Shown here: piece after piece, positions 2,761-64,000 of the stretch | How positions within the stretch are numbered: position 1 is the stretch's first letter | Layout of the letters: each line of letters begins with the position of its first letter | The notes under the pieces: generated by a model | Told to the model about the DNA's origin: nothing | Databases searched by the model: none | Seen by the model: only the letters and a program-made list of their open reading frames with translations | NCBI GenBank assembly: GCA_038496445.1 | Contig: JALMLS010000183.1 | Coordinates: forward strand, 1-64,000 | Length of the DNA: 64,000 nt | Source of the DNA: Trichosphaerium sp. ATCC 40318 | Lineage: Eukaryota > Protista > Tubulinea | Reading direction: 5' to 3' | Translations under genes and position numbers: made by a program

Positions 2761-3846
2761 TTAATGACGGACAAGAAACTCACTGGTTAATAAGAATTGA
2801 CCAGCCCAATACAATGCCATTACAACAAGTTGGTATTGTGTTTTATCTAGAGGAACCTCATCTCGTAATTCTGTTTACAACAAGTGTTAACATTTAACAA
2901 AACACATAGGGTAAAACAAAACTTACCAGGGCTAAATACACGAATACCAATCAATGCATCGCTTGCCATAAATAAGAAAGCTCCAATACACGTCTTTGTT
3001 GTATCAGTTGAAGCGTAGCTAGCCATCAATACAATCATGAGTGAATACCCTACAACGGCAACTTGCATGACATCCTCACTCGGCCATATGCAGTACACTG
3101 CGATGGCAGCTACGCGCAAAACACGTGTAAGTTAACGATATATAATTTAACGAGAAAGAATTTAGAAACACGTTTGTAGCTGAACACGTGCACGCTGACA
3201 CGTTCGTTACACAAATAAAAAATGACAAAAACAAAAATAATACTAGAGATACAATAAAAGTTGGTGACGTACCGAGAATACTGAGAACTACGAAGAGAAC
3301 AGGAGGCGGTTTAAGCGTTTTGCTCTTTTTGACGTACGAGGTAGCGAAAGCGCGTGCAAACAACAAATGAGCGACTGCGAATGCGCCAAGGCCGTATAAA
3401 AAGAACTCTTGCTTGTACTAAGCATTTATACCGGTTAGATTAACCGGTAAGTTTTTAAAACTAATCAATAATGGCAAGTACCTCTAGTAGGAAGTCGCCT
3501 AGAGCCGAAGACAATAGTGCCAATGCAAGGCCAGTTCCAAATTCACCAGAATAAGGTGCTGTTACAGCAGAGAACGCCAAGAACACGCAAACGAGCGGTT
3601 TAGCGATTAAACGCACTGTAGGGATATCTATGCGCAAACGTGAGCTATTAATGATACACAGTGTTACCGCAACGCGAATAGGAGTTATTCGCTCAATTTG
3701 CTCGGTTGCTTTTTCTTTTTTTCAAATATCTTTCGGGCTGTTCGCTCTTATTTAGGCATACCTTGCAACAAACCAACTACATATACGGCCACTAGGACGA
3801 CAGCAAGTTGGACGTAGAGGGAAAATACTGGCTTTGGGGTAGGCAT
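2761..3846 (-). CDS. yhhN: YhhN/TMEM86-family lysoplasmalogenase-like membrane protein (multi-exon)
   Basis: Motifs KPLVCVFL, ALLSSALGDFLL, GLGAFAVAHLLFARAF, VGYSLMIVLM, GAFLFMASDALIG and VMALYWAGQFLL are characteristic of YhhN. Confidence 0.9.
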
Positions 3847-4311
3847 GGTCTTTATTGCGTTAGAATGAGAAATTGATTTGGAGAAAAAAAAACAGCCGCA
3901 AGAAAATGAGAAACCCTTTGAACGGACACCTGTCACATTTTAACAAACAATGACGTATTAGGTGCTAACACCCCACCACTGAACCACGAGTATACAAGGG
4001 ATCACAAATGGCAGCTGATCACCGCCTTTAATTTTTATTTTTCCTATTTTCACAAAATAATGCCTTCATTTGGTTTTCCTCGTTTTGGAGCACCTCCATA
4101 GTGCTCACCTATATACAATAACGACAAGAGCATCCCTTGCAGGCGACACAACCACAATACGCTAACTACAATCCGAAAAAAAAAAACAAGCAAGGCAAGC
4201 CGACGCATTTAGCGCTTTGAGTGCCGTCCCTTATTTTTAGTGTCGCTTTTTTTCGTTTGTTGATTTTTTTAAATAGTTTTGCACGCTTTTTATCTCTTCG
4301 AATAGCACGCC

Positions 4312-5247
4312 CTAATCTGTGAGGTCATCACGTGAGTGCGGGTCCAGTGGTATTTGCTGTCTGTATGCTGCAAGCAATTTGTTGGTCGACATTTGTTCGC
4401 TATCTACACGACAAGCAATTAATATTCATTTTTTATACATGTAAAAAAAAAAATAAAAAACAACGACAGACTCGCTAAAATGCTACAAACCGTATGCAAA
4501 GTTGCACAAGGTTTTTTACCATGTAGGTCTAAGCGTTTTCAAAAATAAAACGGTAAAAACAACTGAAATGCATGTATACGGTATAAAATGCTTGAACAGT
4601 AATTTGTGGTACGCACCTTCCATGTCGTACAAGTGTCGGAGCTGAGACATAGATAAATCTTTTCTTTTTTTGTGGTATAGCTCCAACAGCGTCTCCACAT
4701 CAATATTCTCGCGTCGTTGTAGCGTTTGAATAATTTTACGCATTTTGTCACGTTCGGTGAGTTGTGCGCGTCTACGAGCCAAGAATTCCTTCACTTCTAT
4801 CTGCCTCTTGCCGAGCATCGCCTCGTCGATTTGTAAGGTCGGATAAATTTCAGTTTGAAACTTTTCGCCGCTAAGGCCAGGACGCGGCTTCCTGTAACGC
4901 GTGTTGAGCGAAGGCCTTCGATTCGTGTTGTATAATGCAGGGTCGAGGTCCTGGTTCATGTACTCCTTACTACACGCTTGGTATTTATCTGAGGTGCCTG
5001 ATCGTTCACTAGATTTGCCCACTCCTTTCATCCAGTCTACTGCCTTCAGATTTGATTTAATAAGCTGCGTGCGAGACAACTGACTGCGCGTTCGTTTGTC
5101 CAGGGACAGTAAGAAATCGTCCACTTTTCTTTCCACGCTTCTAGGGTAGTTTTGTCGCCTTTCGAGCACATTTAGTCGTTCGATATTGTCGGAAGTTAAA
5201 CCAACCCGCGATCTAGAGCTTTGGTTGTAACTTGCTGAACGGGCCAT
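4312..5247 (-). CDS. Hypothetical protein (2 exons, basic, helical C-terminus)
   Basis: Long exon from ATG 5247 to GAAG|GTGCGT (~4616), spliced in frame to a short last exon DSEQMSTNKLLAAYRQQIPLDPHSRDDLTD* (stop at 4312). Confidence 0.65.
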
Positions 5248-8721: not shown

Positions 8722-11700
8722 CTATACCGCCTTTTGTATGCGATTGCGTGTCACGTGTCCCTCTGAAGCTGCTCTGAGCAGTGGCTTATCTTTCCTGCGT
8801 CCACGTCGTGGCTTCAAGCCAGCAACAGAATTTCCCCGCTTTCTTCTTTTTTCTCTCACTTTCTTTTTAACATCTGCAGCTTCCTTATTATGTTTTGAAT
8901 GTACTTGCTCGGAGCGTGCTTCTCTTATATCACCGCGACTAGTTGGAGTAGGTCCATAAAGTGCTTCCTTTTGAAGAAGTGAGAGAGGAACAAAAACTGT
9001 GGTACAGACGGAGGCTCTGTAAAACAAATTGCATACCAATTTGTTCGCCATTCTGTTACTAGACTTCTGGATTCCACCTCCTTTTTTAATCTCTTCTACT
9101 CTAAAAGTGACAACATATCTAATAGAACACGAATATGTTAGACAGCATAGATACAAGGAGTGAGCAAAATGCCTTGTTTCTTACCTAGGGATTGCTTGAT
9201 CTCTAAAGAAGACTACCCATCGCTCATTTGAAAAGACGGGGCTAGCATCCTTTGGTAAGAATACACTATCAAACCCAAGTTCATAAATCTCCGAAAAATC
9301 AAGGCGGTTCTGTGCCTTGTGGAACTCCCTGTGGCACAATATAAGACGTATTGTACAAATGATAGGTATTGCAACGCACCAAAACTTTCCTATACCAACC
9401 TCACATAAAAGCACTTTCTTACCAGTACCAACACTAAGTGATTCTGGAGGAGCATCTAAATAGTAGATTAACAAAAACAATCGCTGTACAAATTTATATC
9501 ACGTGCCTTCTTCAAAGTAAATACCGCGTCCTACAGCATCAGGTTTTTTAGGCAAGTCAAATCCATCAGCTACTACTTGTGCCAAGTTATTCAAATGTTT
9601 GCCTGGTCTAAAGAACTTCAACTCGCTCTTAGGCTCCCTAAAAAAAAAGTCTTTAGTAATCTACACATTCATTCATTGCGATCTAAACTTACCTTAAAGT
9701 GATACGACGTGTTTGATACCGTCTATCGAGCCTAGGATTAACAACACACACGGCGTTTTCTATACTTAATTTGACGTTGGTGGCGCGTCTGGCGTATTCT
9801 TGTAGTATTTTCTCAAGTCCATCAAGTTTTGTTTGATCTCGAACAGGTACAAATTCAGTTCTAGTTGATATATTTCCCTAAACCAAAACTGTCACGTGAT
9901 TTTTCTTTTACGCGAGTTTCTATCACGTGCCTTTAATTTGTCTATTTCTTTGAGCAGTATTTTTGCCTTTCCAATCGTTAGCCCAAGTCGTTTAACGTCA
10001 CGTTGATTCAACTCCAACAACGCCTCTCCAGTAATTTCTTCTTGTCTAAAAAGGCGCCTAATACCTAAGCATGTAGTTTTAGTACGTAGCTATGGAGTTA
10101 TGAATGCGTCTTACTTGCTAATCCAACCGTTTCTAGCCAATGACCAACGTCACTGATAGACCAAGCAGATGGTTTTACCGAAGGTGTTGCGTTGCCGTCC
10201 TTTGTGCCTCGACGACTACTTCCCCTTTTCGCAGATTTAACAAAGTGATTTTTAGAAGAAGATAGAGGAGCTTGTTCGATGTAGTTTGCTTTGTCGACTA
10301 AACAAATAGTCAATAAAAAACACAGCAACAGTTTTAGAAAAACTGACCAGATCCACGTCGTGGCCTTGAACCTTTCCCCAAAGCCTTCAATTTTTCTATT
10401 GCTGAGCGAGACCCATTATCAGCCGCTTTTTTGAGCCAGTGTTTAGCTTGTGGAATAGATTTCGTTTGTCCAAGTTTCCCATTTAGGTGCGATAAACCGA
10501 GCTCGTATTGCGCCACACTGTCTTTATTATTACCAGCTCTATAAACACAAAAAGTTGGTTAACTGGCTTCCAAACAACCAAAAATAAAAAACACAAAAAA
10601 CCCGAAACGCACTTCAGATACCACGTGTACGCCTCTAAAATATCCTTATGACAACCGTAACCACTAATGCGTTTTAGGAATTTTTAAATAGATCACGTGA
10701 AGACCAAAAGAAAACCTGCCCAACTAGCAATATACAAAACGTACTGCTTCAACATGTATCCAACTTTGCGTTGCGCTTTTGGATGTTTCCGTGCTGCTGC
10801 CTTCCTGTACCACTTAAACGCCTTTTTGAAATCAGTGGCAGCTACGCCGGTACCACTTCCATACATACAACCAAGATCGTGCATCGCATCTATACAGTAC
10901 GTGAGCATCAACCAAGATAAAAATAAAAAAGACAACTGTAACAAAAAGTGCACTGACCAACATGGCCCTGACTGGCCGATCTATGTAGCCATTTAATACC
11001 ATCTTTTGCATTTCTTGATGTTCCCACGCCGTGGAGTAACATTGTGCCTAGATATGGCGTACATCAGGTTTATTAATAACTAGTGATGTAATTACCTGTG
11101 CGATATTGAGCGGACATGTGTTTTTGTTTTGCCGCCTTATGAAACCAAAGGAAGGCTTTTGCATCATCTTCTGGTACGCCGTATCCATACAAATAACACT
11201 TTGCGATATTATATTGTGAGTCCGGATCGCCTTGAAGTGCTGCATTGAGGTACCACTAGCAAAAAGAGTTTAAAAATTGTGAATTGAAAGAGTGTATCTA
11301 ACACCAAAAAATATGCACCTCGGAGGCAGCCCTAGCGCAACGGCGTTAGAAACAATATGAATGTGAGCAAATTAAATTATGTAGATACGCACCTTAAACT
11401 TTGTACACAACCGGTACCCGTCTGATAACAGTTTGCAAGATTATATTGGGCCTGTAAAATGCAAAGGTGAGTTTTTTTTTTTTTGATTTGTAATTATTTG
11501 ATTTTGTGAAGTATACTGAATCTTACATCTTTGTGTCCACCTTTTGCCGCCTTTTTATACCACTGAAAAGCCTCTTCAGCAGACTTATCAACGCCAAGAC
11601 CGGAGTCGTACATACAACCGAGGTAGTATTGCGCACGAACATGACCTTGATGTGCTGACTCTTCGAAGCTCTTCTTTGCTTCAGAAAATGACTTTTTACA

Positions 11701-18725: not shown

Positions 18726-18793
18726 AAACGCTGAAGTATTAATATTAACAATCTAATGTGACATACAATGTAAAGAACAAAACGGTTTATTAT

Positions 18794-21906: not shown

Positions 21907-22816
21907 CGATGTACTAGTCAGTGATTGAAGAGAAGGTGTAAGTTGAGTTGTATTGTTATGTTTATTATTTGTTTACAATTAGTACGTTGGGAGACTTCAT
22001 ACTATTATTGTTGTTAGTAGAGCAAGTTGGGCTACTATCACGCCTAACTTTTGATATTATCAACCAAGGTTATATTCTTAACCTCCACATTGACAATCTT
22101 TCTGCGAGTTGTTTGAACTCCTCCTGGAATAATTGTTGGTACTGCAATCATTTGCTACTCCCCTTGATGACGTTGACGATGAATTTCTGAGCAACAATAC
22201 AAGTTACCAACTTGTTTGAAGATGATTCCGACAACAAAGATGAGGAACTTTACTTTATGGAAAGAATAAAAACGATTAACTTCAGATGTCTCTCCGGTCA
22301 TATCGGAATCACATATAGAGCTCATTTCAAGAACAATTAAAGAAGTTCAAGGACACGGATGATATTCAACAGTATCAAAAGAGACGAAATGAAGAGGTCT
22401 TTTAAGAAGGAGATTGAAAGGAAGATTACAATGTGCAATACGTCTAGACAGAGTCATCAACGAAGAATACAACTCATAGACCTGTGCATCCAAAGACGTA
22501 CCCAAGAAGAGTGTTGAAGATCACAAGAACACCACTCAAGAGGAACAATTACAAGATGAATCTATATTTATAATTATATTTGTAATATATAATCTCGTAG
22601 TCATAGAACTACTTGATTCTAGGGAGGCAGAATGTAAAGATGCCCGTATTTACATATCTCAATTATACTGATGTTCCGTAGGTATCTCATACTAATTATG
22701 AAATCTCCCAAACAAACATAACATTATCTCAAATCACGTGCTTGACTAGAGTCCAGTAAAGTCAGCACGTGTGACGTAATTGACCAACCCCACCGCAAGT
22801 ACCAGCAACGTTTTAA

Positions 22817-23752
22817 ATGTCAATTAAACGACAATCATCGCTACAAGGCGTTAAACGATGTACAACGTTTCAAGAGCTGCCACCAGAGACTACAACGCAT
22901 ATTCTTCGCTATTTAAACAAAACCCAGCTTATTCAAGCTTCTACTGTTTCTCACGTGTTTAATGACATCATCCGTCACAATATTGGGTTTGATTGTATCA
23001 AACTGAGATCCTCATCACATTGTGCAGTATTGAAAGGTAGTCCTTTGCTTAAAAACACCAAAATAGGTTTTTCGTGTGGTTTCATACCTTCAAAGAGTGA
23101 TTTCGCATGTCTCTATGGCGTCCATACAATACATCTGCACAGCACAGAAACCACTGATGAAGGCATCATTGCATTAGTACAGGGAGGAACACACCAGATC
23201 CATACCATCAGCTTAAGAGAGTCACCCATAACAGATATTGCATTAAAAGCACTTTGTGGCGTACATACAATTGAACTTTTTTGGTGTAGCCACTTTACTT
23301 TAGAGGGAATAAAAGCAATCAAAAACCCACACTGTATTCTGCTCACCGATCCAAAAAAAGAGTGGTTTGAATACCTCTGTAATATACATACTGTACATCT
23401 CATTGATGATGAGAATGTAGTAAACCCAAAGCTTGATGATGAATTCAAAACACTTACAAATGTCAAGCACTTATATCTATGTGATGTCAACAGAATAACC
23501 GATTCAGCTTTTAGTAATTTAGGAAACCTTGAACTGATTTCTCTTTCGTTTTGTGACACCATCACAGATTCATGTTTTAAGAACTTGGTTGGCCTTGAAC
23601 ACCTTAAGGTGTGTGGTTGTCGAAATATTACAAACTCATGTTTGACACATTTGAAATCTCTTAAATCTGTTACACTTTACGGAGAAAATATCAAAATAAC
23701 AAAAGCGGCAGTGGAGGCACTTGATCTTAAATTCAATCACGTGCGACGCTAA
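22817..23752 (+). CDS. F-box / leucine-rich-repeat protein, intronless
   Basis: F-box FQELPPETTTHILRYLNKTQLIQASTVSHVF; LRRs such as VHTIHLHSTETTDEGI and LELISLSFCDTITDSCF. Confidence 0.9.
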   Translation: MSIKRQSSLQGVKRCTTFQELPPETTTHILRYLNKTQLIQASTVSHVFNDIIRHNIGFDCIKLRSSSHCAVLKGSPLLKNTKIGFSCGFIPSKSDFACLYGVHTIHLHSTETTDEGIIALVQGGTHQIHTISLRESPITDIALKALCGVHTIELFWCSHFTLEGIKAIKNPHCILLTDPKKEWFEYLCNIHTVHLIDDENVVNPKLDDEFKTLTNVKHLYLCDVNRITDSAFSNLGNLELISLSFCDTITDSCFKNLVGLEHLKVCGCRNITNSCLTHLKSLKSVTLYGENIKITKAAVEALDLKFNHVRR

Positions 23753-24437: not shown

Positions 24438-25910
24438 ATGGCCAAACATCTAAAAACCACCCTAAATACGTTAACACTGGACGCCATTTCAGTATTTTGT
24501 AACTATTTACCAATCAACTCAATACTGTCTTTTCGAATGACTTCAAAGAGATGTTTTCAAGGCGCTAACATATCTTACTTGAGACACATCTTAAACTTGA
24601 AAAAATATTTAAAAACAACACTTGATAATCACTACAAGGATCCTATTGCTGTCAAAAATCATTTGGGTACTAAGACAATGAATAATCTTTATGCATTGAA
24701 TGAATATATTAATTTGAAACGGGCTCCGAGGCCAAAAGGTAAGCTGTTTCTTTCCCTTTACCTGTACCATTGCTACTTACCTTGGTAAATAAAGGCACGA
24801 TTAAAAGATATTTATCATGGTTCTTCAGAAAGTCAAAAGTACATAGTAAAGCAAACGGACTGTTCTGTGAGTTTCAGTTGGATACAAAAGAAAATGAGGA
24901 TGAAGTCTATGGCGTTTGTAATTACTATAAACTATACAACTATCGTAATGAAAAGCTAGAACTTTCTATTGACGTGGAATTGAGTATTGGAGATTCAGAA
25001 TTAAATAAGATTATCAGCGGTAGTGAGATGTTTTGTGAAAACCTAGCAACAGTTGTAAGACTGAAAATGAAAGATGAGTATCAACATTTGGATGACGAGC
25101 AGTTTTGTATTCGAATCTTAAGGGATATTGGTCTAAAAAAAAACAACCTTTACCCTGCACATGAACTAGAAACTAATTTGAGTTGGCCGTACCCAGGCTT
25201 TGTTTTAAAAAGACAAATGCCAAAAGTACCACAATTTATTTCGCTTCTGGTAAACAAGTCATTTCATAAATACGTCACAAAGAGGATAACAGCAATCTTG
25301 GCACGTGTGGCAATTGAAAATACGAAAAAGAAGGATAAACAATATTTAAGGCGCTACACAAATAAGTCGTACGATGTTCAACCCAAATCAGTTGAGATGA
25401 TATCATGTGAATCTTGGAGAGTAGGTCATTGTGAATACCTATATGTGCGTGAATACCTATATGTGCGTGTTATTCTCTCTCTTCGTTTTATTGGTTTACT
25501 TATACTTTATCAAGGCTCTTGAGTATTTTGATATTGTCTATCGATATAAAGGTCATGTTGTCCACTGTACCTTTGAAAGTTATCAGTATGGAAGTACCTT
25601 CACTATGAAGATGAGCTTGGACAATACGCCTATTGCAGAATCGGTCACAAAAGCCTCCAGTACAACTATTACACCAAGAGCTTACATACCGTTCAACATT
25701 AGGAATACATTAAGACGTATATCTCCAAAAAAGTCTTCGTCAATTACTGATAGCATAGTATTCTTGGCTTCGTTGGCAGTTCGCTCATGTCCAATTATTA
25801 CAAAATGTGGAGAGACAGATAGTATGGGAAGGGGTCATCTTTTAAATGAACCATTACTAAATTCCTTTTTCCTTCATGTTCGTGATTGTGAACGAGATAA
25901 AAAGCAATAG
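24438..25910 (+). CDS. F-box-like protein of unknown function (3 exons)
   Basis: N-terminus LNTLTLDAISVFCNYLPINSILSFRMTSKRC is F-box-like. Three consecutive ORFs joined at GTAAGC...AG and GTGCGT...AAG. Confidence 0.65.
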
Positions 25911-26432: not shown

Positions 26433-28049
26433 ATGGGTACCAAACAGTCTACAAAACGTAGAGAGAATACAAGCGCAAGAGGAAAACAAACGCCAACCAC
26501 TTCGCCTACAACGCTCTCAAACGATAAAATACCGCAGAAAAATGCTATTTCCAACACAACCAATAACCAAATTCCACAAAATAGCCAAATACAGCAAACA
26601 GCGATGAACACCGCAGGAGATGTACAAGGAGACAGTATTGAAGAAACAAAAGAGTCGCTGTCACAAAACGAACATCAAAAAGAACCGTTAGAGTACTCAG
26701 ACTGGATAGTCATTGAAGAAGGAGAAGAAGAACTGTTAGATCTCTTTCCAATGGAGATATGGGACCAAATCTTGTCATACCTCACGCCACAACAACGTGC
26801 ATTATCTTGTATTGTATCACGTGATTTTCACATGCTATGTAACAACGTGAGATTCTGGTCAAAAGCATTTAAAAAAAAATATAGACGAAGCATTCCAACA
26901 AGCACAGATCTTTATGACCAAATAGGATTCCCACATGAGAAGTACTGCTACTTTAGAGTACACTCTAATTATAAGGAGAACATGTCGAAGGGTATTTATA
27001 GACGGTGGGATTTCCAGTATGCTTATCCAAGTTTGTATCACTTTAACGGTTGTGCATTAAACCAAAAATGGTTGTTAATGCAAGGTCAGGGTGTTGATAA
27101 AGGGTATGTTTATAAACTTGATGATAGAGGTATTGATTGCTTACCTCTTGTAAATCCTAAACCTACCATACCTTTAAATAATTACATCTCAAAATTGGAT
27201 TGGATAGATGATGACACGTTTATTTTTGGTGGGTGGGGATTGGCTGGAGTAATACGATTACCAAATTCCGAGATGGTACAAGAGTTCAAGGTAATTATTT
27301 TCTTCTATCGAAAATTGCTTTAGCTTTTTTTGGAGCAGATATTTTTAGCTTCATCGTTAATCACTTGGAATCAGTTGTCCTAACACGTTTCTTAGCTACC
27401 CGTTACCAGTAAACGACAAGCGGATAATATTATATCAGGTGTTAGTTATAAAAATGGTAGAGCAATTTTAGCTGCAAGAGAAGGGAGCATGGCCATTTAT
27501 GACATTGAAAGAAACGAATCTATTTGGGTAGGTCCTTTTTCTTCAATGACTGATGTCGAAACAAGCGCAACATGGTGTGATGAGAATGTATTCAGTGTAG
27601 CTTTATGTCCACGGCAACCAAAAGGATATATGTATATCTGGGATTTACGTGCAAAACCACGTGTTACAGTAGAATTACCACGTGGACAATTCGCAAAAAG
27701 AGACTGTTTACATTTTTGGGAAAACGAGTTGGTTCTTGCTTCAGGATGTAAGGTAGACTTATATGACGTACGTAAGTTATCACAAGAACCTTCAAGAAGT
27801 GTTAGGGCATATAGCAATTGTAGGGGGTATTGTAAAGATGGAGTTATCTTGGCGGGAGCTGATAAAGTACAAGTTATTGATTTTAAAACACTTCAAGTCT
27901 TGGCATTGTTAGAAACACCAAAGCTTTGTAGGATGGTTTATTCTCTAGGTTGGACAGGCAGGTATTGTATGGCAAACTGCGGTCACAAAGTATGCTTTTG
28001 GGATTTCGATGCTTGTACTACTGAAATCATAGACACAGCACCAACTTAG
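26433..28049 (+). CDS. F-box / WD40-like propeller protein
   Basis: F-box LLDLFPMEIWDQILSYLTPQQRALSCIVSRDFHMLCNNVRFW; WD-like ends YIWDLR, VDLYDVR, VIDFKT, VCFWDF. N-terminal MGTKQS is a possible myristoylation signal. Confidence 0.85.
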
Positions 28050-28633
28050 TAGTTTTCTATTATTTTTGTGTATCATTTACGACATTTATTCCGCTGCTTG
28101 CGAATGTGTTTCCTTTGTTGTACTTCGCATCAAATAAACATTAACTTTCTTCTGGGATTTGAGACTTTTCTTAAGCGACATTGTACTTCAAGTGGCGTTA
28201 ACTAAGTTCTTTTTATTATTTTGAAAACGACAAGGAAGCTTCTACCAACACTTTTTTAGTATTCGTTTAATAAAAAGGCCTTTGAACGTACGCTTAGCGT
28301 TTTTGAAGTAAATACATTTTAACGAGCTTTATCAGTTTGAATAAAACGTGACGCGAACGGTTTTGAGCACGTGAGAACCGAAGGTACAGTATAAGACGAA
28401 AACTTGATGTTAGCGATGTTTTTACATGAAACGAAAGCAGCACTCGTTACTGTTTACAGCCGAGGCTTTTTTTAATTTTTCCGTAATTTAATCTCGGCCT
28501 ACCTTCTACTGGGCCTCCCAGTCTATTAATAGCGTAAAATACAGTTTTTTTTTTCTGAAAATCACGTGTTCTTTTTTACGCACACGTGTGAGTATGTAAC
28601 TTGTTTGTATTTAGGTTACTCACCTGTGTCCAC

Positions 28634-30055
28634 ATGTCATTGAAGCCAGGGCCATATTGCCTTGTTGACAACACATCCAGGACTCTACTAGATTTGCCTC
28701 GTGACATACAACGTTATTTATGTACATTCAATGAGGAAACGTTCAAGAAGTTTCATATCCTATCGAAAACAGCTGCAATCAATACACACTATAATAACAA
28801 CCTTGATAGAAACGGTATCTGGATGACATGGTATCCCTGTGGTGGTTTACACTCTCAATATGGTATAGTCACTGGTGAATACAACGGTGAATTTAAACAA
28901 TGGTTTGCGAATGGAAGCCTTCAACAACAATGTTGGATGGTTAATAACGGATGTAACGGCGAATTTAAACAGTGGTTCCAAAGCGGAAAACTTGAGTTAT
29001 GCTATCAGTATGTTGATGGCGTTCAAAGCGGTGACGCAAAAGTATGGTATGAAAACGGACAACTTAGTTGGCACCGTATTTATGCCAACAATAGACAAAA
29101 TGGTGAATGCAAACATTGGTTCCAGAGTGGAAACCTTTATAGTAAGTGCGTATATGTTGATGATAAGAAGGAGGGAGAGTACCTAACATGGTATGAGACA
29201 GGTCAACTCAAATTACAATATTACTGTGTTGCCGACAAAAAGAATGGTCCATTCAAGAGTTGGCATTCTAATGGACAGCTTAAATTAAAGTCAACCTATG
29301 TTAATGGTACTATAAATGGTATTAAGAAACAGTGGTATGATAGCGGACAACTCAAGCTACATTCCGCGTATGTTTCTGGTAAATTAAGTGGTGAAGCTAA
29401 ACAGTGGTATTACAATGGACAGATCATGTCACAAGACATGTTCGCTGATGATAAAGTAAATGGCGAAAGTAAAGAGTGGTATAACAATGGACAACTTGCT
29501 GTACTTTGTACAAATAGTGATGGTAAAAAGGTTGGAGAGTATAAGCAGTGGTATGATAATGGACAAATTGACTATCTATGCCACTACATTGACGACAACA
29601 AACATGGAGAGTACAAAAAGTGGCATAGAAATGGTCAATTGAAAGAGGAGTGCAAGTATGTGAACAATAAACAAGAAGGAGATTACAAGTCTTGGTACGA
29701 TAATGGTCAATTAAAAGAGCAGTGCTATTATGTCAATGGTAAATATAAAGGAGAAAGAAAGTCTTGGCATGACAACGGCCAATTGCAAGAGAAGTGCAAG
29801 TATGTGAGAAATAAGCGAAAAGGAGAGTATAAGTCTTGGTACAATAATGGGCAATTAAAAGAGCAGTGCTGTTATGTCAATGGTTCACGTGAAGGAGAGA
29901 GAAAGACTTGGTATGATAGTGGGCAATTGCGTGAGCATTGTATTTACATCCATGGTACACCACAAGGAGATTATAAGTGTTGGAATGTAAATGGTAGATT
30001 AATTCACTCTCTCGTTTATGTTAATGGTAAAGTGAGAGCGATAAAAGTGGTTTGA
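28634..30055 (+). CDS. F-box-like + MORN-variant (YwqK-type) repeat protein, intronless CDS
   Basis: LLDLPRDIQRYLCTF followed by ~17 24-aa repeats of the type GEYKSWYDNGQLKEQCYYVNGK. Confidence 0.9.
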   Translation: MSLKPGPYCLVDNTSRTLLDLPRDIQRYLCTFNEETFKKFHILSKTAAINTHYNNNLDRNGIWMTWYPCGGLHSQYGIVTGEYNGEFKQWFANGSLQQQCWMVNNGCNGEFKQWFQSGKLELCYQYVDGVQSGDAKVWYENGQLSWHRIYANNRQNGECKHWFQSGNLYSKCVYVDDKKEGEYLTWYETGQLKLQYYCVADKKNGPFKSWHSNGQLKLKSTYVNGTINGIKKQWYDSGQLKLHSAYVSGKLSGEAKQWYYNGQIMSQDMFADDKVNGESKEWYNNGQLAVLCTNSDGKKVGEYKQWYDNGQIDYLCHYIDDNKHGEYKKWHRNGQLKEECKYVNNKQEGDYKSWYDNGQLKEQCYYVNGKYKGERKSWHDNGQLQEKCKYVRNKRKGEYKSWYNNGQLKEQCCYVNGSREGERKTWYDSGQLREHCIYIHGTPQGDYKCWNVNGRLIHSLVYVNGKVRAIKVV

Positions 30056-37640: not shown

Positions 37641-37689
37641 ATAATGTGAACAAATTAACGGCACACAGCAATCTTGTGTAATTTTTGTA

Positions 37690-38505
37690 CAGCAATTTGC
37701 GAACGATTCTCAACAGGTGTATTGTCCAAGTCATCTTCACAGTGAAGGAACTTCCATACTGATAACTTTCAAAGTTACATGGACAACATGACCTTTATAT
37801 CGATAGACAATATCAAAATACTCAAGAGCCTTTATAAGGTATAAGTAAACCAATACAATGAAGATAGAGAATGAAACGCACATATAGTATTCACAATGAC
37901 GACTTTCCAAGATTCACATGTGATATAATATCAAACTGTATTTGGTGAAATATTGTACGATTTATTTGTGTAGCGCCAAATATTGTTTATCCTTCCATAC
38001 GTAACTTTCAATTGCCACACGTGCCAAGATTGCTGTTATCCTCTTTGTGAGTATTTATAAATGATTGTAAACCATAAGCGAAGAGAGAATAACACGCACA
38101 TATAGGTATTCACAATGACCTACTCTCCAAGATTCACATGATATCATCTCAACTGATTTGAGTTGAACATTGTACGACTTATTTGTGTAGTGCCTTAAAT
38201 ATTGTTTATCCTTCTTTTTCGTATTTTCAATTGCCACACGTGCCAAGATTGCTGTTATCCTCTTTGCGATGTATCTATGAAATGAGTTGTTTACCAGAAG
38301 CGAAATAAATTGAGGTACTTTTGGCATTTGTCTTTTTAAAACAAAGCCTGGGTATGGCCAACTCAAACTAGTTTCCAGTTCACTTGCAGAGTAAAGGTTG
38401 TTTTTTTTGAGACCGCTGATAATCTTATTTAATTCTGAATCTCCAATACTCAATTCCACGTCAATAGAAAGTTCTAGCTTTTCCTTACGATAGTTGTATA
38501 GTTTA
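37690..38505 (-). pseudogene. Inverted, deleted and internally duplicated copy of the 24438-25910 gene
   Basis: Near-identical translation ELSIGDSELNKIISG/LKKNNLY...WPYPGFVLKRQMPKVPQF...CEYLYVRV with an in-frame deletion. The segment RITAILARVAIE..CEY occurs twice (37880-38050 and 38090-38270). Confidence 0.9.
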
Positions 38506-43918: not shown

Positions 43919-44486
43919 GTGTGACTTGCACAGGGAAACGTTTGTAACAAGACTTGTAACGACTTGAAGGTTCCGGATTTTTTCCAATGCAGTCTTTGCG
44001 CAAGTTCTCGGAACATCAAAAAGCCATCTCACTAACAACTTCATCAAAAGACAAAGACAGATATTGCCGTACAACACAACAGCCTCGTTAACTATTTTAA
44101 ATATTGGTGTAATAGCTTTGAAGTCCCTACAGCTACGCTTAACGTTTGTAAAGCAAACAGACTTTAACAAGCCCTATCAGTCTAAATAACACGTGAACCA
44201 AACGGTCTTGGAGCACGTGACAACAGTACGTATATTTAAAGACGAAATCTTGATAAGCAATGTGTTTACAGGAAAAACGAACACCAGGACTCTCCAAGTC
44301 GCTGATAGGGCCTTTTTTTAGCTTAGTTCTATCTTGTCCTACCTTACATAGACCCTCCCAGTTGTATTAAAAGCTTAAAAATACAGCTTTATTAAAAGGA
44401 AATCACGTTTCTAGAAAGACCTTGTTATACTCTTTTCTTATTAGCACGTGTTGACATTATTTTATTTAGATAAGTCACGTGTCCAA

Positions 44487-48407: not shown

Positions 48408-51030
48408 TTACCGTGTTTCTCTCTTCAAAGGAGCGAAGAAACCTTCATTCTGGCATATAACGGATAGTGGAGATGTACCGCAAGACCATACACGAGGAGA
48501 CACCGATGGTGGGCGACCAAGAATACCTAAACTCGAATGATTAAAAACCGATTTATTGGTATTTTAAGAAAAACAAAAGAAGGTTTACCTTGTAGTCCAC
48601 TGCTCATTTGAAAATTCGTTATTTTTGTGATATCAGAGTCAGCAGGGTCAGGATCGCAAGAGGATAAATCTATGAGGAGAATAAGTTAAAAAAATTTTAA
48701 ATCACGTGATAAAATAATTAAAAAAAAGAAGGAACATAAAAAGAAACCGTACCATGATCGTTATCGCGTGATGGAGGGCTGTGTTTTAACTGCATTGTGT
48801 CTGACAAGTTTCTGAGTGCTGATGAGTTTATTGGTGTGCGTGGTTTGTTGTAATGAGAATCTTCAGCTCCAACAATACCAAGTGCCGGTGGAGGTGATGT
48901 AGGTGTTCCAAAACCTGAAGGAGGTGGTACGATAGTCCCATTTTCAATATTACTGAGTGCTTGTAACTGTTCTTGTGTGAGTGTTGGGTGGTATTTTGCT
49001 GTAGCAATATCAGGCTTCTTTTCGTCTCTTGGTGGTTGAGAAGAGTTTGTAGGAACAGGCCTATAGTGTCCTGGTTCTAGTGGAAGTCAATGACTGAGGT
49101 ATTTACTTAGCTATCGTTTTTTGAAGTATCAAAAACGTACCGGCGTGCGCCGTTGGGTATGGGAAAGAGCTTGGTGATTCTGATCCTGTACGACGTCTTT
49201 TAAGAGGGCGAGGCTAAATAGTTACGTCAGGAAATGATCTTTTTTTAAAAAGAATTCCAGGATGATTGGCGTACGTTTGAAACTGGTGACTGGTCTCCAT
49301 AACCTGTTAGAGAAGCGAGCATTGAACCACTACAATGAATTCATAAGCATTTTATGACGTGATACAAAAAAGGGAATAGCCCAGAAAACAACAAAAAAAA
49401 AAGAAGAAGAATTGATGAGATAAAAATTTTAACGTACATTTCTTCTCTTGTGCGACCTTGGAACATACCGGCTTGTTGGATGCTTCCGATAACCTGAAAG
49501 ATATTATTAGACTTTTTATAAAAGGGTATAGTTTGTGAGCTTACGTCTGGTTTATCTTGAAACATTTGGTAAGCGTTTAATAATAGCCTTACTTCTTCGG
49601 CAGAAAATCTTTGGTCCCAATCTATTTTAAACGGTTAGTACGGCACGTGATTTATCAAAAAAAAGGAAAAACATTTGTTGTACATGCTTCTAAAAATAAA
49701 CATTGTTCGGAAGACGTACTTGGTGTTGTGTAAGGGATGAATGCAGGCCTGACGCCGTATTCTTGAGGTAGTCTGCTTTTTTGAGCAGCAATATTGTGAT
49801 AGTTCATTTTTGACGATTGCTGGAATTGATAGCCGTATGGAGACGCTGGGTAGGACATTCCTGAATATATTTAGAGGCTGTATAGATACCAAACAATAAA
49901 AAAGCAATTGCTCTTGAACTCCGGTGGTTCACAGAAAAAAAAGTTTGGGAAAAATTTTATCTACGGGGGAAAAAGTTTTGTTGTAGAACCGATCTTTTCG
50001 GGCCGTTTTGTTTACTTTGTTATGGTTGTTGTAAAGAAAGTACCTGGGTGAGGCCAGAAACCTTGAGAGGAGAAATATTTGATTGCATTGTGTCTTTGTT
50101 CTTCAAGTTTTTTAGCACGTGATTCTTCTTCTTGTTGTTTTTTCTTTTCTTCTTCTCTTTTCTAAAAACGTATAAATTCCAACATACAAATAAATCGTCA
50201 TGGGACGAAAAGTAAACCCGCCCTCCCCGAAAAACAACAAAAAACCCACAAAACGTTTGAAACATTCGAAAAAACTCCCAAAAAAAAAAAAAATTTGTTT
50301 CAAACATTCAAGTTTTTCCGAGCGAAGTCTCCGGAGAAAGCGATATTTGTACGCTTAACACATTTCGTATTAAACCTCCAAGGGAGATTGTATATGAGAT
50401 TACATCTATATCTAAATACGTACTTGTTTTAGAAACCACTTTTGAGCATGTGTTCTAACTTGTGTTGGATTTCTTGTGCGCACGTGCATAGCAATACTTT
50501 TTACATCTTTTCTACCATACCTGTTTTTAAACCGTTAACAACCACTGACACTCAAAATTATATAATTTACTTGTCAAGAGCCTCTAGAAACCTCTCGTGC
50601 TCATCTTTACGCCAATAACGTGGTTGAGAAGACTATTAAAACGTCATTTAGCGTCAACACGTGGAAGGGCGGTAGCTTTTTTTTTTTGAAGTTTTTTTTT
50701 CGTTGTTTGTTACCTTTTTCTTGCCGTTCTTCTCTTCTTGTTGCTTTATTTTCTTTTCTAGGTCCTCCGTCTATAACACCAAGGAGTTAACAATAATAAA
50801 GAAATAAAAAAAAGCGACTATCGCTTGTATACTAAGAGCCCACGTGGGGTAAGGTATCGTACCTTTTTACGTTCAGTAAAAAGTTTATCTTCAAGTTCCT
50901 TGATTCTACTGAGCAAGAAATCAACTTTCTTTGCTAAATCTTCCTTTTGTTCAGTCTTTGGATTGTTACCACACTCATTAGTATCATTTGTTGCTACAGA
51001 TTGACTCCTTCTTGATTTCGTAGGTAACAT
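48408..51030 (-). CDS. SHAQKYF-class MYB transcription factor with N-terminal coiled coil and a second Myb/SANT-like segment
   Basis: Spliced exons give RYWRKDEHERFLEALDK|YGRKDVKSIAMHVRTRNPTQVRTHAQKWFLKQ and, later, RFSAEEVRLLLNAYQMF...FQGRTREEI. Not visible in the ORF track because the exons are short. Confidence 0.85.
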
Positions 51031-52830: not shown

Positions 52831-55800
52831 TTAATACAGTTTGTACAGGTCGTTATCCATAGCATGTGCCCCATTATATGCCAAACAAAATAATTGGTCA
52901 CGTATACTATCCGCTAGGTAATAGTCAGCATAAATTTCTCAACTTTGCCATCACTGCTTTTTTTTTCTTTTTTTTTGAAATAAATTTAACTTTGTAAAGC
53001 CTTACCTGCGGGTCTATTTGCTGGGGTTGCTGCGTGTGTGCACGCATGGAAAATCTTCAGTAGAGGGTCCCACTCGCGTGGAAGGTCCTTGATAGGTGGT
53101 TTTATACCTACAGAAGGTAAGAATAAGTAAAAACCCAAAACAATAAAAGAGCAGTTAGGTAAAAAAAAAAAATCCAAAAAGCCGCGGAACTTTGTGCTTC
53201 CGTCGCACAACAGATGCCCAACTCAGGTTGTTTCAAATTTTTCTGAGGTCTTACCTTCCTCTACCATAAGAGGAATAGCGAATCTATCCTTAGCATCCTC
53301 ATAAGGTCTCCGCATAGTAATGAGTTCATACAACAGCATCCCAAAACTACAAGAAAAAAAATCACGTTATTAGCACAACAAGCATGCTTTTTTGTCGCAA
53401 ATTTTTTTTTCCGTTCAAGGGTGTTGTACCTCCATATATCTGCTTTATTTGAATAACAACCGAGTTTCTTTGCTTTGAAAACCTCAGGAGCTGTGAATGA
53501 TGGTGTTCCGATTACTGTTCTTGCTTTGTCGTTTCTGGATTGTAAAAGTTTTGCAGTGTCAAAATCTGCTATAGCAAGGCGTTGAACCTCTCCTGATTCT
53601 GAAAAATTGACCAGTATATTATCAGTTTTTATATCTCGATGGATAATATTATGTTTATGTAAGAAGGCAAGCCCTAGGGTACAAAGACTTTTGTCAACAA
53701 CAAAAACAAAAAAAAAAATCAAAAGTGTCAAAAAAAAAAATCCTTAAAAAAAGTTTTTTGCGATTTCGCAGATTATTACACGTGAATATACACGTGATAA
53801 ATTATAAATAATCAAAAATACACGTAATTATTCAGTTATGCTTTTTATAAAAAAATTACACGCACCTGCAGCCACTTGATACGCCCACTTTGCAGCGACG
53901 CGAACAGAGAGTAAAAATTGACTTCTTGTCTTGAACTTTCCTTCTTTGTTTTGTATTCTACGCTTTGCTAAAATTGCCTCAAGATCAGAGTCGTATAGCG
54001 TTAAGAAAAGGCATATAGCATCATCTCTATGTTCATGGTGTAGGTATTGACATATATTTGGATGTCTTGGTAATTTCTCAAGAACTTCAATCTCATTAAG
54101 AAATCCAGTTGTAGTCACTTCAGAAACTTTTGCAACTTTCAGTTTCTTTAATGCACACCTCCATCCATCAACCTCGCATGAGTACCTAAACATACAAAAA
54201 TCAATCAGTTACTTATAATAATTTTCATGAAATTCAATAATAGCTATCAAGACAAAGACGGAAGAAAAGAGAAAAAAAAAAAAGAATCATGTCAAAAAAA
54301 AAAATCCAAAAAAAAGATCACGTCTTCGGGAAAACTTTGTCCTGTCTTTCATTTACGTACAAAGAAGCCCAACTTCCTCCCTGTCCAAGCTTCTTATGTA
54401 AAGTCCATTTCTTAAACTGTATAGCCTTATTCTTCTTACGTTGTGTGATAGCATTAGCTTTCTGTAGCAACTTGTTCCTCATCTTTGAACCACCAGAATT
54501 ATTATTATGATTCACGTGATCATTCATATTCGCTAACTCTGAGTTACGCTTCCTTATCAACCAATCCTTTGCTTCTATCAACCTTTGTCTTTCTTCTAAC
54601 TGCATATCTTTTGCATCTAAACGTCTTTGTTGTGTCTCAACAAGAGTACGAAGTGTTTCCAAGTCATCCTCTTTCTGAGAAGAAAGCTTCTTATTATCAC
54701 GTGTTTTGGAAGGTTTTATAGAATGTGATGTTGGTGGGGCAGACGTTATAGAATGTGATGGCAAACGGGTTTGTGTTGGTCTACGGTAACGTGCAGGTGT
54801 ATCTAGTCTAGGTGATATGTTCTGAGTCCTCCTAGCTTGCGCTAGTTTCTTGTTTATATTTCTACATTCTTCTGTTTTCTTTTCTAGAGCAGACTCCAAA
54901 GTAAGAAGCTTTGCTTTCTGTCTCCACAAGAACCGTTCGCAAGTTTCTAGTTTATCTTTCTGGTTCGATATTGTTTCGCGTTGCTATAGAAAAAATAGGT
55001 GTTAGAGTAAGGCAAAGATGATGAATAAAGCGTCAGGTAAACGAAAAGAAAAATCGAAAAATCGAAAAATCAAAAAAAATCAAAACCAAAAAAAAAAGCA
55101 CGTTTTCACGTTTTTTGCGTGTAATGTACTTCTCAGACGATTATACTTGATTAAAAATAAATAATAGTATATTATTATTATACATTAATATCTTGGAAAG
55201 CGATACCAGTGAATTAGTGGCAATTTACAACCAAAAAAACAAAAATAATTTAATGCCAATAAAAAAAAAAAAAAATGTACTGAGCTTATGTTTACGCGCG
55301 TACTTGTTTTATAAGTAGTAGAAGCTTTTTTAATTTCTCTTTACTTATCGAAACCATTGTTGTGCCATTACCGCTATCAAACCCGCTGCTTGATCGCGTT
55401 AAACCCGCGGTATTCGCTTGTAGGCTCACTGTGTTGCGATAGCCAGAGGCAAGTTCGTTTGACAGCCTAGCCAAATCGGCTGACACCTCTGGTGTATTTA
55501 AGGAGTGCTCTGGTAGGAACACGTCTGTATGTCTAGCGAAACGTTTTTTAGTGCACTCAGCGCAACTTAAACTGGAAAAGACAACTGTTTTGGTATGTAT
55601 TGACTTACTTGTGTGACAGTGATAGATCTTCCACGCTGTGCGTCTCATACGAAGCTAAGTCGTGTTTATCGTACAATTCGTCCCTAATTAAAAAAAATGA
55701 TTAATTATGCGTTTTGTGATTAGTTGCAAAGCTGTTTTACGCCAATTCTTTCGTATTGGAAGTGATTGAAACCTATACGTGCGGGTTGCTAACAAAAAGT

Positions 55801-60760: not shown

Positions 60761-62360
60761 TTAGTGGTTCAACAAGATTTGTACAGCTGCTGCAACGTCT
60801 ACTTTGCCTTGAATGAGAGCTTGAATATTGCTTCTTCTGTCGGTGAATCCCATTGCTTCCAATGTCTCTACAGCCTGGCTGAAAGCGTTAGCTCTAGCGA
60901 TTTGAGACTGAGTCACAGGGAAAGGAGCATCTGGAATGACATCTCTTGATTGAGGAAGTGGAGGTGCGACCGGAGGTTCTGCCTTTGCAGCTTCTTGTTG
61001 TTTGCGTTCTTTGGCCTCTTGCATTTCTTTGACGAGTTGAGCACGTCTTGCAGCCATTGCTCTTTCCATCTGGGCATGTACTGCATTTCTACGTGACTCT
61101 TGTACCTCTTGTAGGAGTTGAGCCTTTCTAGCTTGTGTAGCTTTTCTTATTTGAGCGAGAAAGTTGTTACGGCGTGACTCTGCAATCTCTTGAACGATTT
61201 TGTCGTGTCTTGCTTTCGATGCAATCTTGACTTTCTCAAGAAATAGTTTGCGAGCGTTTACACCATGTCTAGGTCTTCGCATAGGGCATTGGCTACGGGC
61301 TCTGGAATGCCATCCACCGAAAGACTGTTGGCGAGCTTCAAGTAGCTCTACAAGTGTTTTGAAAGCGTCAGTGTTTCTAAAGGAATTGGTTAGTAACGCG
61401 AATCGAGTTTTTGTGTTTTCTATTGCGTACCTTAAGTTGTTTAAGTCGGCGTCAGCTTTGATGTGTGCGACATCGTGGAATCCATTGCGGATGCTGTTGA
61501 CAAGAGAGCTTATTGCTGCTTCTACATTACCGAGAAGAGACTCAGCACAAGCAAGGTTGTATGCAGCTGTTGGGTTTGAAGGACGAATTGACAAGAATGC
61601 TTCCAAGTACTGTTTTGCTAACTCTACAGCTGATTTCTCGTTGGTTTGCATTAATCGTAGGGAAGTATTATGCAAAGTACGGAGCAATTGTGAGACAATG
61701 ACATGTTGTAGTTGATGAACACTTCTATAAACATAAAGTCAGTTTTTTGCATTTTTTTGACATCAGGGCTTTTAGAATGCCTTAAAAGGATCGTACCTGA
61801 AGAAAGGAGGAAGCTCTTTAGTGATACCTTGGATTACAAGGCGAATATCGTCTGCCACTTTTGGATTTTGAACGTTTTCGATCAATTTTTGAGTTAAGGC
61901 TTCAATGAATGATGGTTTCTGGTTTAGAGTTAGTTATTGCGTTTAAAAGGATGTGTGGTACCTCTGATGGAGTAGGTTTAGTCTCTGCAGGCTGTTGTGC
62001 GTTGTTTTGAGGAACTGGTTCTTCAAATGAAATAAAGACTCTCAAAACGTTTCCAGAACCAATGACGTTGATGGCTTCGCGTAGTTCTTCGTCTGAGGAT
62101 AACTAGAAGGATATTCGAATAAGTACAAAGTGCAATTCAAACTTGAAGTTGTGTATGTGTTCGCGTACAGTAATTTTATCGCCATCAGAGTCTGTGTACG
62201 TAATCTTAGCGGTTTCGAAGTTAACGGTCTTGTAGAATGATGAAAGCTTTGTTAGAACTCTATCGTAGGTAAGACCGGCTATTGGGAGTGTTACTCTTCG
62301 CAAGTCGTCGCTTCCTTGGCGCTTTGACTTGATTGTAATCTGTTTCTGTTGGGAGGCCAT
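60761..62360 (-). CDS. PB1 - TPR - UBA protein (p62/NBR1-like adaptor layout)
   Basis: PB1 ITIKSK...DDLRRV...ITYTDSDGDKIT|LSSDEELREA; TPR-like AAYNLACAESLLGNVEAAISSLVNSIRNGF; UBA FSQAVETLEAMGFTDRRSNIQAL...VAAAVQILL. Confidence 0.85.
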
Positions 62361-63066
62361 GTTTGTTGAGGAGAAGGTGTTGTATGTATGAGGTTTGTAG
62401 ATGAATGATTATATTTACGTCATTGGGAACCGAGATTCGAGAATGACGTTCAAAGAAAGTTTGAGCCAAAAAAAAATTCCGCCAAAAAATCCGTCCAAGA
62501 ACTAGCTGAAATTTCGATTACTTTCGGCGAAACAATTGCAAAAGCGCAAGAACTCGCGGGTAATTATGATGAAGCGTATGATAGCACTTCGAAATAGTGT
62601 TTGGTGTTGTTAGTCTGTTTATCAGTGCGGCGATCGTTAATTCGCGTAAACGAGATGTCGTTTAGCGTATACATTACTCTGCAAGCTGTATTGTGATGAA
62701 TGAGGTTATTTTGCTTTGTACCAACTTGAAATCGCACTGAACGCTGTATTTTGGTTAATTACGCGTGGTAAACGATAATTTGCATACTAGTGCCGGTTAC
62801 TAAAAATTACTGGCAGCGAATCTGTTTTGATAATTTAGTACAGTTTAATCACCTTCATTCATCGTGGAAATCAACACCGATACCCTCCAATAGAAAGAAT
62901 GTACTTGGACATCTATTTACTGTGAGAATAGTGTAGTACGCCTCCAATTACGAGAGTGTTGCATTAGACGCTCCATATACAGTGTAAGCGGAACAAAATA
63001 CTGTTTTAGAAACACTTTCCTGTTTTAAGTATTCCAACACTACTATCTAACAAACAAGCCCATTAG

Positions 63067-64000
63067 ATGCATCACATGCAGCATTTTGCTATTTTCTCAG
63101 CACTCTTTACGCTTTGCCTTGCTGTGGGACTCACAACTTTTACTGCTACGGATGTTGCAATCAAAAGGCCATTTAAAAGCGTATGACGCATGTTTATCTT
63201 GCTTTCGCAAACAATTACGAAGCTAGCGCTTTGTTTACCTTTTTACCTCGTTTTCGAGTCTATTTCGCTTGCACTACGCCCTATCTATGTATTAACATTG
63301 TTTTTAGCCCTTTTATACGCTAAAAGTTTGTACTACAATAAACCGAGTGAACGCATCTCATGGTACGCGTATACATCCGTTGTAGGAAAACATCGCACAG
63401 TTTTTATTTCAAGCAGTTGTTTCCTTATACGTACAATTTTTCCTCCGTTTTTAGTAATATCTTGTGTATGTGGAGTACACTTGATGTGAACGCCTAGCAC
63501 CTGATTGAAAACACGGTTTTTTTTCCCTTGAGAATCGCCTTGTTTACCCATACACTCTAGGAGTTATGATAGCGATTCAACTGATACTTATAGCAGCGAA
63601 GTTAGCTACAGGAATGTACGTCATCTTTAGAATGAGTTCAAATTTCCGACCATGTACTTTTTGGCCATCAGTTTTTTAACTTTTGTTTGAACTTAGAGCG
63701 CCCAGTACTTGCTTGAGAAAGACTTTCCTAATCTTGTATCATCAAACGGAAAAGAACTTGAAGAACGAGATGGCTGTACTTGTTTCAGAGAGAGCCCAAC
63801 AGCATCAAACGGAAATATTGAAAAATTGTGCTACAAAGGAGACAATATTTGCTTGTATGTCGCATTGTTTCTTGTAATAATATTAATTACAGTTAGTGTA
63901 GAATTCGAGAGTGGAGAAACATGGACATTTGATCCATCAAAGGTTTCACCACGTGACTTTACGAACAATAATTCTGAAGACACCACAAAAAAAAGGTAAA
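63067..64000 (+). CDS. Secreted hypothetical protein, multi-exon; may continue past the right edge
   Basis: Signal-like MHHMQHFAIFSALFTLCLAVG; in-frame exons ...YYNKPSERISW|SYDSDSTDTYSSEVSYRN|SAQYLLEKDF...CTCF. Confidence 0.55.

Follow-up and report, generated by a model that had tools for sequence, protein, structure and literature searches.

Why should one six-letter palindrome, CACGTG, recur about once per kilobase through the exons, introns and intergenic DNA of a eukaryote? The question is raised by a 64-kb stretch of DNA of Trichosphaerium sp. (contig JALMLS010000183.1, positions 1 to 64,000; hereafter the window), on which the whole analysis is based. Highly iterated palindromes (HIPs) have been an unsolved puzzle of cyanobacteria for 30 years. 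The literature searched describes no eukaryotic case of a HIP, and the search returned no report of an excess of CACGTG in any eukaryote. The tests described below reveal that the excess is real and robust, and they support the general inference of a force acting at the level of DNA. By analogy, the excess may be regarded as a eukaryotic, hexameric variant of HIP behaviour, and it is called HIP-like here. The draft genome of Trichosphaerium sp. has been reported to comprise 70.9 Mb with 37.69% G+C and a mean intron length of 75 bp (PMC10521059). The words "motif" and "methyl" are absent from that paper, and the CACGTG excess is not described there.

An exact search of the window found 83 CACGTG sites spanning positions 3122-63955, with a mean spacing of 742 bp. 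The first-pass annotation of this DNA had counted about 80, and every coordinate that it quoted was recovered. The word is present in each 4-kb bin, and the coefficient of variation of the spacing (0.97) indicates near random placement, with close pairs slightly too frequent. The G+C content of the window is 37.5%, and base composition predicts 7.7 sites, so that the earlier figures of about 35% and about 6 sites were both too low; the excess is 10.8-fold. All other hexamer palindromes in the window stay at or below 1.9-fold over their base-composition expectation. Dinucleotide-preserving shuffles (n = 100) contained 11.1 +/- 3.0 sites with a maximum of 20, and none of the 100 reached 83. The observed-to-expected ratio (O/E) was 7.5, 5.9, 3.5 and 1.71 under Markov models of order 1, 2, 3 and 4, respectively. 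Modelling ACGT and 5-mer frequencies, a test named in advance, did not remove the excess, since at order 4 (O/E 1.71) CACGTG has a z of 7.0 and ranks first among all 4096 hexamers of the window. These unmasked ratios are conservative because the lower-order tables are inflated by the CACGTG sites themselves. With the sites masked, tables of orders 0-3 predict about 7.5-10.1 sites per strand. Composition and lower-order words were rejected as the cause, since the Markov models of orders 0-4 and the site-masked tables all fall short of 83.

The excess is confined to the complete hexamer. The probability of G following CACGT is 0.66 in the window, and one quarter of all ACGT sits within CACGTG, while ACGT outside CACGTG occurs at expectation. 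The O/E of CpG is about 0.93; with CpG as a whole so near expectation, the word is not a CpG context spared from a general decay. All nine classes of one-letter neighbours have O/E values of 0.7-1.4 with masked tables and of 0.47-1.45 with unmasked tables. Among these nine classes, the window contains neither a shoulder of near-cognate words nor a depleted source pool. The class TACGTG/CACGTA gave an O/E of 0.56-0.91 depending on the model, with 22 sites only. GACGTC, a control of the same composition, had been called rare and indeed occurs just twice, at 36474..36479 and 49192..49197, exactly where it had been placed. Other deviations among hexamers are minor. GGGCCC, GCGCGC, CGGCCG and CCCGGG are absent from the window against 2.8 expected each, and GACGTC, CATATG, GAATTC and TCATGA stand at 0.26-0.33 of expectation, with none of these individually significant after multiple testing. 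TACGTC/GACGTA lies 2-fold above the order-4 expectation and is likewise not significant after that correction.

Coding and non-coding DNA carry the word at the same density. The 29 confident open reading frames (ORFs; 15.9 kb) contain 21 sites (1.32 per kb) and the remaining 48.1 kb contain 62 (1.29 per kb). A simple coding hidden Markov model (HMM) combined with compartment-specific, site-masked Markov tables gave 17 coding sites against about 2.2 expected (7.7-fold) and 65 sites in the rest against 6.5-7.9 expected (8-10-fold). This HMM assigns only about 25% of the window to coding DNA, and many short exons, for example those of MOB1, escape the split. In the confident ORFs, nine sites lie in frame 0 (His-Val) and 12 in frame 1 (x-Arg-x), and no site lies in frame 2 in any of the 29. 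A frame-2 site would require Cys, Trp or a stop. When codons were permuted among positions of the same amino acid, so that protein and codon usage were held fixed, 2000 synonymous shuffles gave 3.9 +/- 1.8 sites, at most 10, and none reached the observed 21. The CACGTG spelling is used in 8 of the 14 His-Val pairs, where codon usage predicts 6%. Nine control palindromes were unremarkable in the same shuffle; the largest excess, that of AACGTT (9 sites, 4.6 expected), is not notable once nine tests are allowed for. The synonymous shuffle and the equal density of non-coding DNA contradict codon or dipeptide usage as the cause, and the same results bear out the earlier statement that neither codon usage nor promoter E-boxes explain the word. 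The bulk of the excess is blind to gene structure, because coding and non-coding densities are equal, synonymous positions are recruited, and sites occur in introns and upstream of genes. The first-pass annotation had placed sites in varied reading frames, in introns and between genes. Its frame 0 (His-Val) and frame 1 (Ser-Arg-Asp) sites, the intronic sites at 53779 and 53791 and the upstream sites at 22735 and 22766 were all found, but its frame-2 sites (Thr-Trp or Thr-Cys) have no counterpart in the confident ORFs.

The sites have nothing in common beyond the hexamer itself. The flanks of all 83 are unrelated and have almost no information content, and self-BLAST of the window places only three sites within duplicated DNA; a dispersed repeat family or miniature inverted-repeat transposable element was rejected on both grounds. 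With these unique flanks and with sites in exons and introns of the window, CACGTG is confined neither to promoters nor to one repeat family, the two restrictions that had been named beforehand for checking. A weak preference exists for A at -2 and T at +2 (46% against 31%, p = 1.6e-4), and the pattern A.CACGTG.T accounts for 18 of the 83 sites. A longer motif was rejected, since only these two positions are informative, ATCACGTGAT has three occurrences, and 8-bp palindromes occur at chance. An origin from splice donors was also rejected; donor-like GT[AG]AG[TC] overlaps just five of the 83 sites.

Paralogous and homologous sequences indicate how the sites arise. The upstream regions of two MORN genes, A and B, are 79% identical and have one of six CACGTG positions in common, at 28368..28373 in A and at 44214 in B. 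Gene A has a further pair at 28563..28588, 20 bp apart and 71 and 51 bp upstream of its ATG (28634), where B has CACGTT or unrelated sequence; the second site of this pair (28583) overlaps the donor-like GTGAGT. Gene B has the pair 44190..44219, in which 44190 is found in B only (AAACGTG in A) and 44214 is the common site. It also has the pair 44445..44481, with its sites 31 bp apart and 42 and 11 bp upstream of the ATG (44487), where A has unrelated sequence and CACCTGTG. At the positions that are not shared, a single substitution or a small indel separates the copies (AAACGTG vs ACACGTG, CACGTG vs CACGTT, CACCTGTG vs CACGTG), and the differences between the two promoters quoted earlier as evidence of turnover are real in the alignment. 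Each upstream region nevertheless retains three to four sites, mostly at different positions. Neutral decay predicts a shared fraction of about 0.24 (0.79^6) against the observed 1/6, a comparison of two paralogues only. Because the shared fraction is close to the neutral prediction, individual sites are not strongly conserved and new ones keep appearing. In coding DNA, the His-Val site at 22952..22957 (+ strand), which lies in the F-box of a 311-aa protein and is confirmed by two RNA contigs, aligns without gaps with His-Gln in P0001, an MMETSP homologue that is 49% identical. This single MMETSP transcript is the sole database homologue of the protein. At the Ser-Arg-Glu site at 29886..29891 (+ strand), within a MORN repeat, the neighbouring repeats are equally long at the aligned place. 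The sites are thus made by substitution and not by insertion of six nucleotides, because exonic sites align without gaps with homologous residues; a six-nucleotide excision footprint is contradicted by the same alignments. In addition, RNA-derived contigs of two studies (2015 and 2023) cover the sites at 22735, 22766, 22952 and 25302 without any difference. The sites are not an assembly artefact, because the contigs of two independent studies carry these four unchanged.

CACGTG is therefore the favoured word at the level of duplex DNA, and it arises by point substitution anywhere in the window. Exonic sites draw on synonymous as well as non-synonymous changes, and the word is no less favoured in introns, 5' regions and intergenic DNA. 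It is held at about 1.3 sites per kb, an 8-10-fold excess, while turning over between paralogues. These observations point to a weak and ubiquitous fixation bias, exerted by a factor that would read the exact hexamer on DNA. If an excess of 8-10-fold is taken as the equilibrium, CACGTG would have a scaled fixation advantage of about 2.1-2.3 over each one-letter neighbour; from the His-Val codon-pair odds, the figure would be about 3. The first-pass annotation had proposed a genome-wide system that creates or keeps the site. Its general inference of such a system held on every test run in the window, and its genome-wide extent goes beyond this one window.

The closest known system is HIP1 (GCGATCGC) together with the alternate cyanobacterial HIPs (Elhai, 2015, PMC4390886; Xu, Lawrence and Durand, 2018, PMC5861425). 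Like HIP1, CACGTG is the top over-represented short palindrome, occurs at about one site per kb in coding and non-coding DNA, has unrelated flanks, is not explained by codon usage and leads to the inference of a cause at the DNA level. The HIP1-like signature claimed at first reading is thus a real statistical resemblance within the window (top rank among palindromes, about 1 per kb, coding and non-coding sites, unique flanks). Unlike HIP1, a GC-rich cyanobacterial octamer containing GATC, it is a hexamer without GATC in a eukaryotic nuclear genome. The excess is about 10-fold here, against 15-300-fold for HIPs. HIP1 sites are conserved between orthologues, whereas the paralogues compared here share sites no more than neutral decay predicts. 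One-off variants of HIP1 have an end-position bias, and those of CACGTG are flat. The link to a cognate methyltransferase belongs to the HIPs, and CACGTG is likened to them on the statistics and distribution of one window. CACGTG is accordingly filed as HIP-like in behaviour and not as a member of the family, because it departs from them in host domain, word and fold excess, and because the match does not so far extend to the methyltransferase link or, among the paralogues compared, to the conservation of sites.

Three other systems invite comparison. The core CACGTG is identical to the E-box or G-box of bHLH-ZIP and bZIP proteins (Myc-Max, USF, Cbf1, Pho4, MITF/TFE and the plant G-box factors). 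The pairs and clusters just upstream of some start codons and the turnover in paralogous promoters also resemble such binding sites. Regulatory E-boxes, in contrast, concentrate in promoters and enhancers, tolerate variants and lack an 8-fold enrichment at exonic synonymous sites. A concentration of CACGTG in promoters relative to coding DNA was not found; the density is equal, with local clusters at three genes. The very-short-patch repair of Escherichia coli by Dcm and Vsr, which favours CCWGG and depletes CTWGG, is likewise a methyltransferase-linked repair bias that shifts the frequency of a palindrome, as may be proposed here. The effect in E. coli is modest and its T-variant is depleted, whereas CACGTG is 10-fold in excess and CATGTG shows no depletion. 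DNA uptake sequences (DUS) of Neisseria and uptake signal sequences (USS) of Haemophilus also occur at about 1 per kb in genic and intergenic DNA and are kept by molecular drive and not by local function. Unlike CACGTG, these words of 9-12 nt are found in bacteria, are not palindromes and are linked to natural transformation. Classical self-marking of the restriction type predicts avoidance of the target and not an excess. A restriction-modification target was rejected for this reason, CACGTG being enriched 10-fold instead.

Neighbouring sites also have a spacing pattern of their own. The 22 pairs of sites at most 200 bp apart peak at 10.2 bp among the periods of 5-20 bp scanned (Rayleigh 9.0, family-wise P = 0.003), with 14 of the 22 distances within 0.17 turn of an integer multiple of 10.2 bp. 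None of 147 control hexamers of similar abundance matched this phasing in the band of 10.0-10.6 bp. With distance cut-offs of 120 and 300 bp, the best period was again 10.2 bp, but P was only 0.07-0.09. The phasing is thus suggestive in a small sample. If real, it implies that duplex DNA is read on one face, by a bound protein or through nucleosomal accessibility. Three pairs are exactly 31 bp apart (22735/22766, 44445/44476 and 9893/9924; the last occupies 9893..9929). A triplet at 34885..35064 has spacings of 102 and 72 bp, all in 10.2-bp phase, and two of its sites are exonic in frame 1. A protein-kinase gene on the - strand has the dyad CACGTG-N6-CACGTG at 53779..53796, within one of its introns (about 190 nt, GTGCGT...CCCTAG). 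Three start codons (22817, 28634 and 44487) are preceded, in the nearest 100 bp, by two to four sites, where the background density predicts about 0.4. At the first of these, an F-box/LRR gene, the pair 22735..22771 has its sites 82 and 51 bp upstream of the ATG, and an RNA contig covering 22197-22791 carries it with no differences.

Which factor reads the hexamer, whether through one of the three mechanisms named in the first-pass annotation (modification with biased repair, self-marking against a nuclease, a bHLH organiser) or otherwise, can at present be answered only in terms of probability. The explanation favoured here, held tentatively and at less than even confidence, is that a sequence-specific DNA methyltransferase and strand-biased or mismatch-specific repair drive CACGTG, as in Elhai's ratchet for HIPs. 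A new mutation that completes a CACGTG recognition site would become methylated, and repair would keep the mutation; a mutation that destroys a methylated site would be repaired back. The word would accumulate blind to gene structure until saturation near one site per kb, and E-box-binding proteins would have put this abundant word to secondary use in the promoter clusters and dyads. The hexamer specificity described above (P of G given CACGT of 0.66, with the ACGT core and the neighbours at expectation) favours a reader resembling a type II enzyme. All-or-none specificity for a word is typical of type II enzymes and not of transcription factors. All-or-none specificity, a spread that ignores gene structure, turnover between paralogues and the density of sites all fit this ratchet. 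The single position of six that is common to the 79%-identical MORN promoters is what continual creation and loss predict. Saturation of HIPs has been proposed at about 1 per 1000 nt (PMC4390886), close to the density found here. Amoebae have been reported to acquire sequence-specific methyltransferases from giant viruses (PMC7253447). Such giant-virus-derived enzymes may offer a precedent for the proposed ratchet. The window has many MORN and F-box genes that resemble those of giant viruses; it has no methyltransferase gene. Several points weigh against this explanation. The suggestive 10.2-bp phasing, the clusters just upstream of three start codons and the similar number of sites at different positions in the MORN paralogues all fit a DNA-binding protein better than the by-product of an enzyme. 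The Vsr-type depletion of the deamination product CATGTG/CACATG is not seen in the window (O/E 1.0-1.08). Furthermore, we know of no methyl-directed strand choice in the mismatch repair of eukaryotes, and everything rests on a single 64-kb window.

The main rival, possible and rather doubtful, is a protein of the bHLH-ZIP type that binds CACGTG as an E-box or G-box and acts as a general organiser of chromatin, nucleosome phasing or promoters. Weak selection in a large population would keep about one site per four to five nucleosomes, gene bodies included. CACGTG is the canonical class B E-box, and such an organiser would account for the excess of sites close to the three start codons. It would also account for the shifted MORN sites as classic binding-site turnover, for the three 31-bp pairs and the N6 dyad, for the phasing of pairs within 200 bp, which no control matched, and for the weak preference for A at -2 and T at +2. 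It fails to predict that coding density equals non-coding density with recruitment of synonymous sites, a combination for which we know of no regulatory motif. The lower-affinity variants CACGTT, CATGTG and CACGCG form no shoulder, single sites in the paralogues are conserved no more than the neutral expectation, and the phasing weakens at the other two cut-offs. This rival and the methyltransferase ratchet could both hold, because E-box proteins could secondarily take up a word that is already abundant. A context-dependent mutation bias of polymerase or repair, with no dedicated reader and with CACGTG as a mutational sink, has little probability. The uniformity of the excess across compartments and the fast turnover would suit it, but it must act at all six positions and on the complete hexamer only, with neighbours and ACGT core at expectation and GACGTC rare if anything, and no hexamer-wide mutational context of this kind is known to us. 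Less probable still is a function in RNA, in which self-complementary CACGUG would serve RNA-RNA pairing or an RNA-binding protein. A compact genome would be transcribed in large part, four sites lie within RNA contigs, and a palindrome is the same on either RNA strand, sense or antisense. The density is equal, however, in introns, upstream regions and coding DNA, with no preference for strand or position, and a real 10.2-bp phasing would be a feature of duplex DNA. The footprint or termini of a mobile element, programmed excision that joins CAC...GTG ends, or a dispersed repeat family is highly improbable. A six-nucleotide scar would preserve the reading frame, and exons and introns are both hit; against this stand the unrelated flanks, the gapless alignments (His-Val with His-Gln in P0001; MORN repeats of equal length) and paralogues that differ from CACGTG by single substitutions. 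An artefact of composition, codon usage or assembly has a negligible probability, since the Markov models of orders 0-4, the masked models and the dinucleotide and synonymous shuffles all fail to produce the excess and the RNA contigs carry four sites unchanged.

The methyltransferase-linked explanation has a stronger form, which is unlikely on present evidence. A true HIP would exist in a eukaryotic nuclear genome, with about 90,000 CACGTG sites written and kept by a horizontally acquired sequence-specific methyltransferase and a mismatch or methyl-directed nuclease. The resulting drive, derived from restriction-modification, would reshape synonymous and amino-acid choice across the genome, and the word would secondarily be adopted by E-box proteins and, with the 10.2-bp phasing, by chromatin. 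The number is an extrapolation of 1.3 sites per kb to the 70.9-Mb genome. If a true HIP-type signature exists in a eukaryote, drive at the level of words is no bacterial peculiarity. The CACGTG system would add a second independent case, with nucleosomes, introns and possibly sex, in which creation by biased repair is separable from selective retention. The strength of the signature can be judged from the confident ORFs, where over half of the His-Val pairs use CACGTG. Motif discovery, codon-usage models and gene finders applied to the Trichosphaerium genome would be misled unless CACGTG is modelled, and any regulatory inference from E-boxes in that genome must allow for a background of 1.3 sites per kb.

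The 83 sites start at positions 3122, 3185, 4329, 5608, 5751, 7165, 7792, 8752, 9500, 9893, 9924, 10622, 10694, 11852, 13804, 14543, 16569, 17082, 17611, 17944, 19298, 19801, 20155, 20464, 21088, 22735, 22766, 22952, 23738, 24063, 24178, 24271, 25302, 26818, 27658, 27679, 28368, 28563, 28583, 29886, 30250, 30297, 30688, 30899, 31692, 32059, 32549, 33120, 34885, 34987, 35059, 37209, 38018, 38237, 39593, 41133, 41388, 43138, 43238, 44190, 44214, 44445, 44476, 48247, 48703, 49644, 50116, 50481, 50658, 50841, 51479, 51953, 52485, 53779, 53791, 54513, 54698, 56084, 58390, 59010, 59890, 60662 and 63950. Further exonic sites include 26818..26823 (+ strand, frame 1, Ser-Arg-Asp) in the ORF of an F-box protein and the pair 27658..27684 (+ strand, frame 1), with its sites 21 bp apart. 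Positions 1-3121 contain no site against about 3-4 expected at the density of the window, a marginal deficit (P 0.02-0.05). This region, with 1895-1929 and 662-1040 the most notable parts, is A-rich and of low complexity and holds a tandem repeat of 139-143 bp and a short telomere-like CCCTAA/CCCTAAA tract. It may be repeat or subtelomere-like DNA.

The host of the window is eukaryotic, as indicated by a spliceosomal intron confirmed by RNA contigs and by the presence of F-box, LRR, kinase and MOB1 genes. Several short exons of a MOB1/phocein-like protein lie at 46128-47267 on the - strand, and most of them were missed by the coding HMM. Rfam and tRNA scans of the window found no non-coding RNA genes. 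The genes at 22817-23752, 26433-27323, 28634-30055, 39530-40558 and 44487-45476 form a cluster of F-box, LRR and MORN_2 genes, and the nearest relatives of their products in feature space are proteins of giant viruses (Nucleocytoviricota). A viral contig of IMG/VR (L001) encodes a MORN protein with 42% identity; it contains no CACGTG against 1.5 expected, too few to inform. A gene segment is present in three copies, with an inverted duplication of 24928-25756 at 37599-38505 (80-99% identity) and a 219-bp tandem duplication at 37866-38304. CACGTG is conserved in every copy (25302, 38018 and 38237, the latter two inverted relative to 25302). The site at 25302..25307 is carried by the RNA contigs of two studies, and the pair 38018..38242 lies inside the 219-bp tandem duplication. 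The three copies agree in every letter over 40 bp around the site. The 52-nt GT..AG intron at 25463-25514 was confirmed by spliced RNA contigs of two runs, and these contigs bear remnants of a SMART-type cDNA adaptor.

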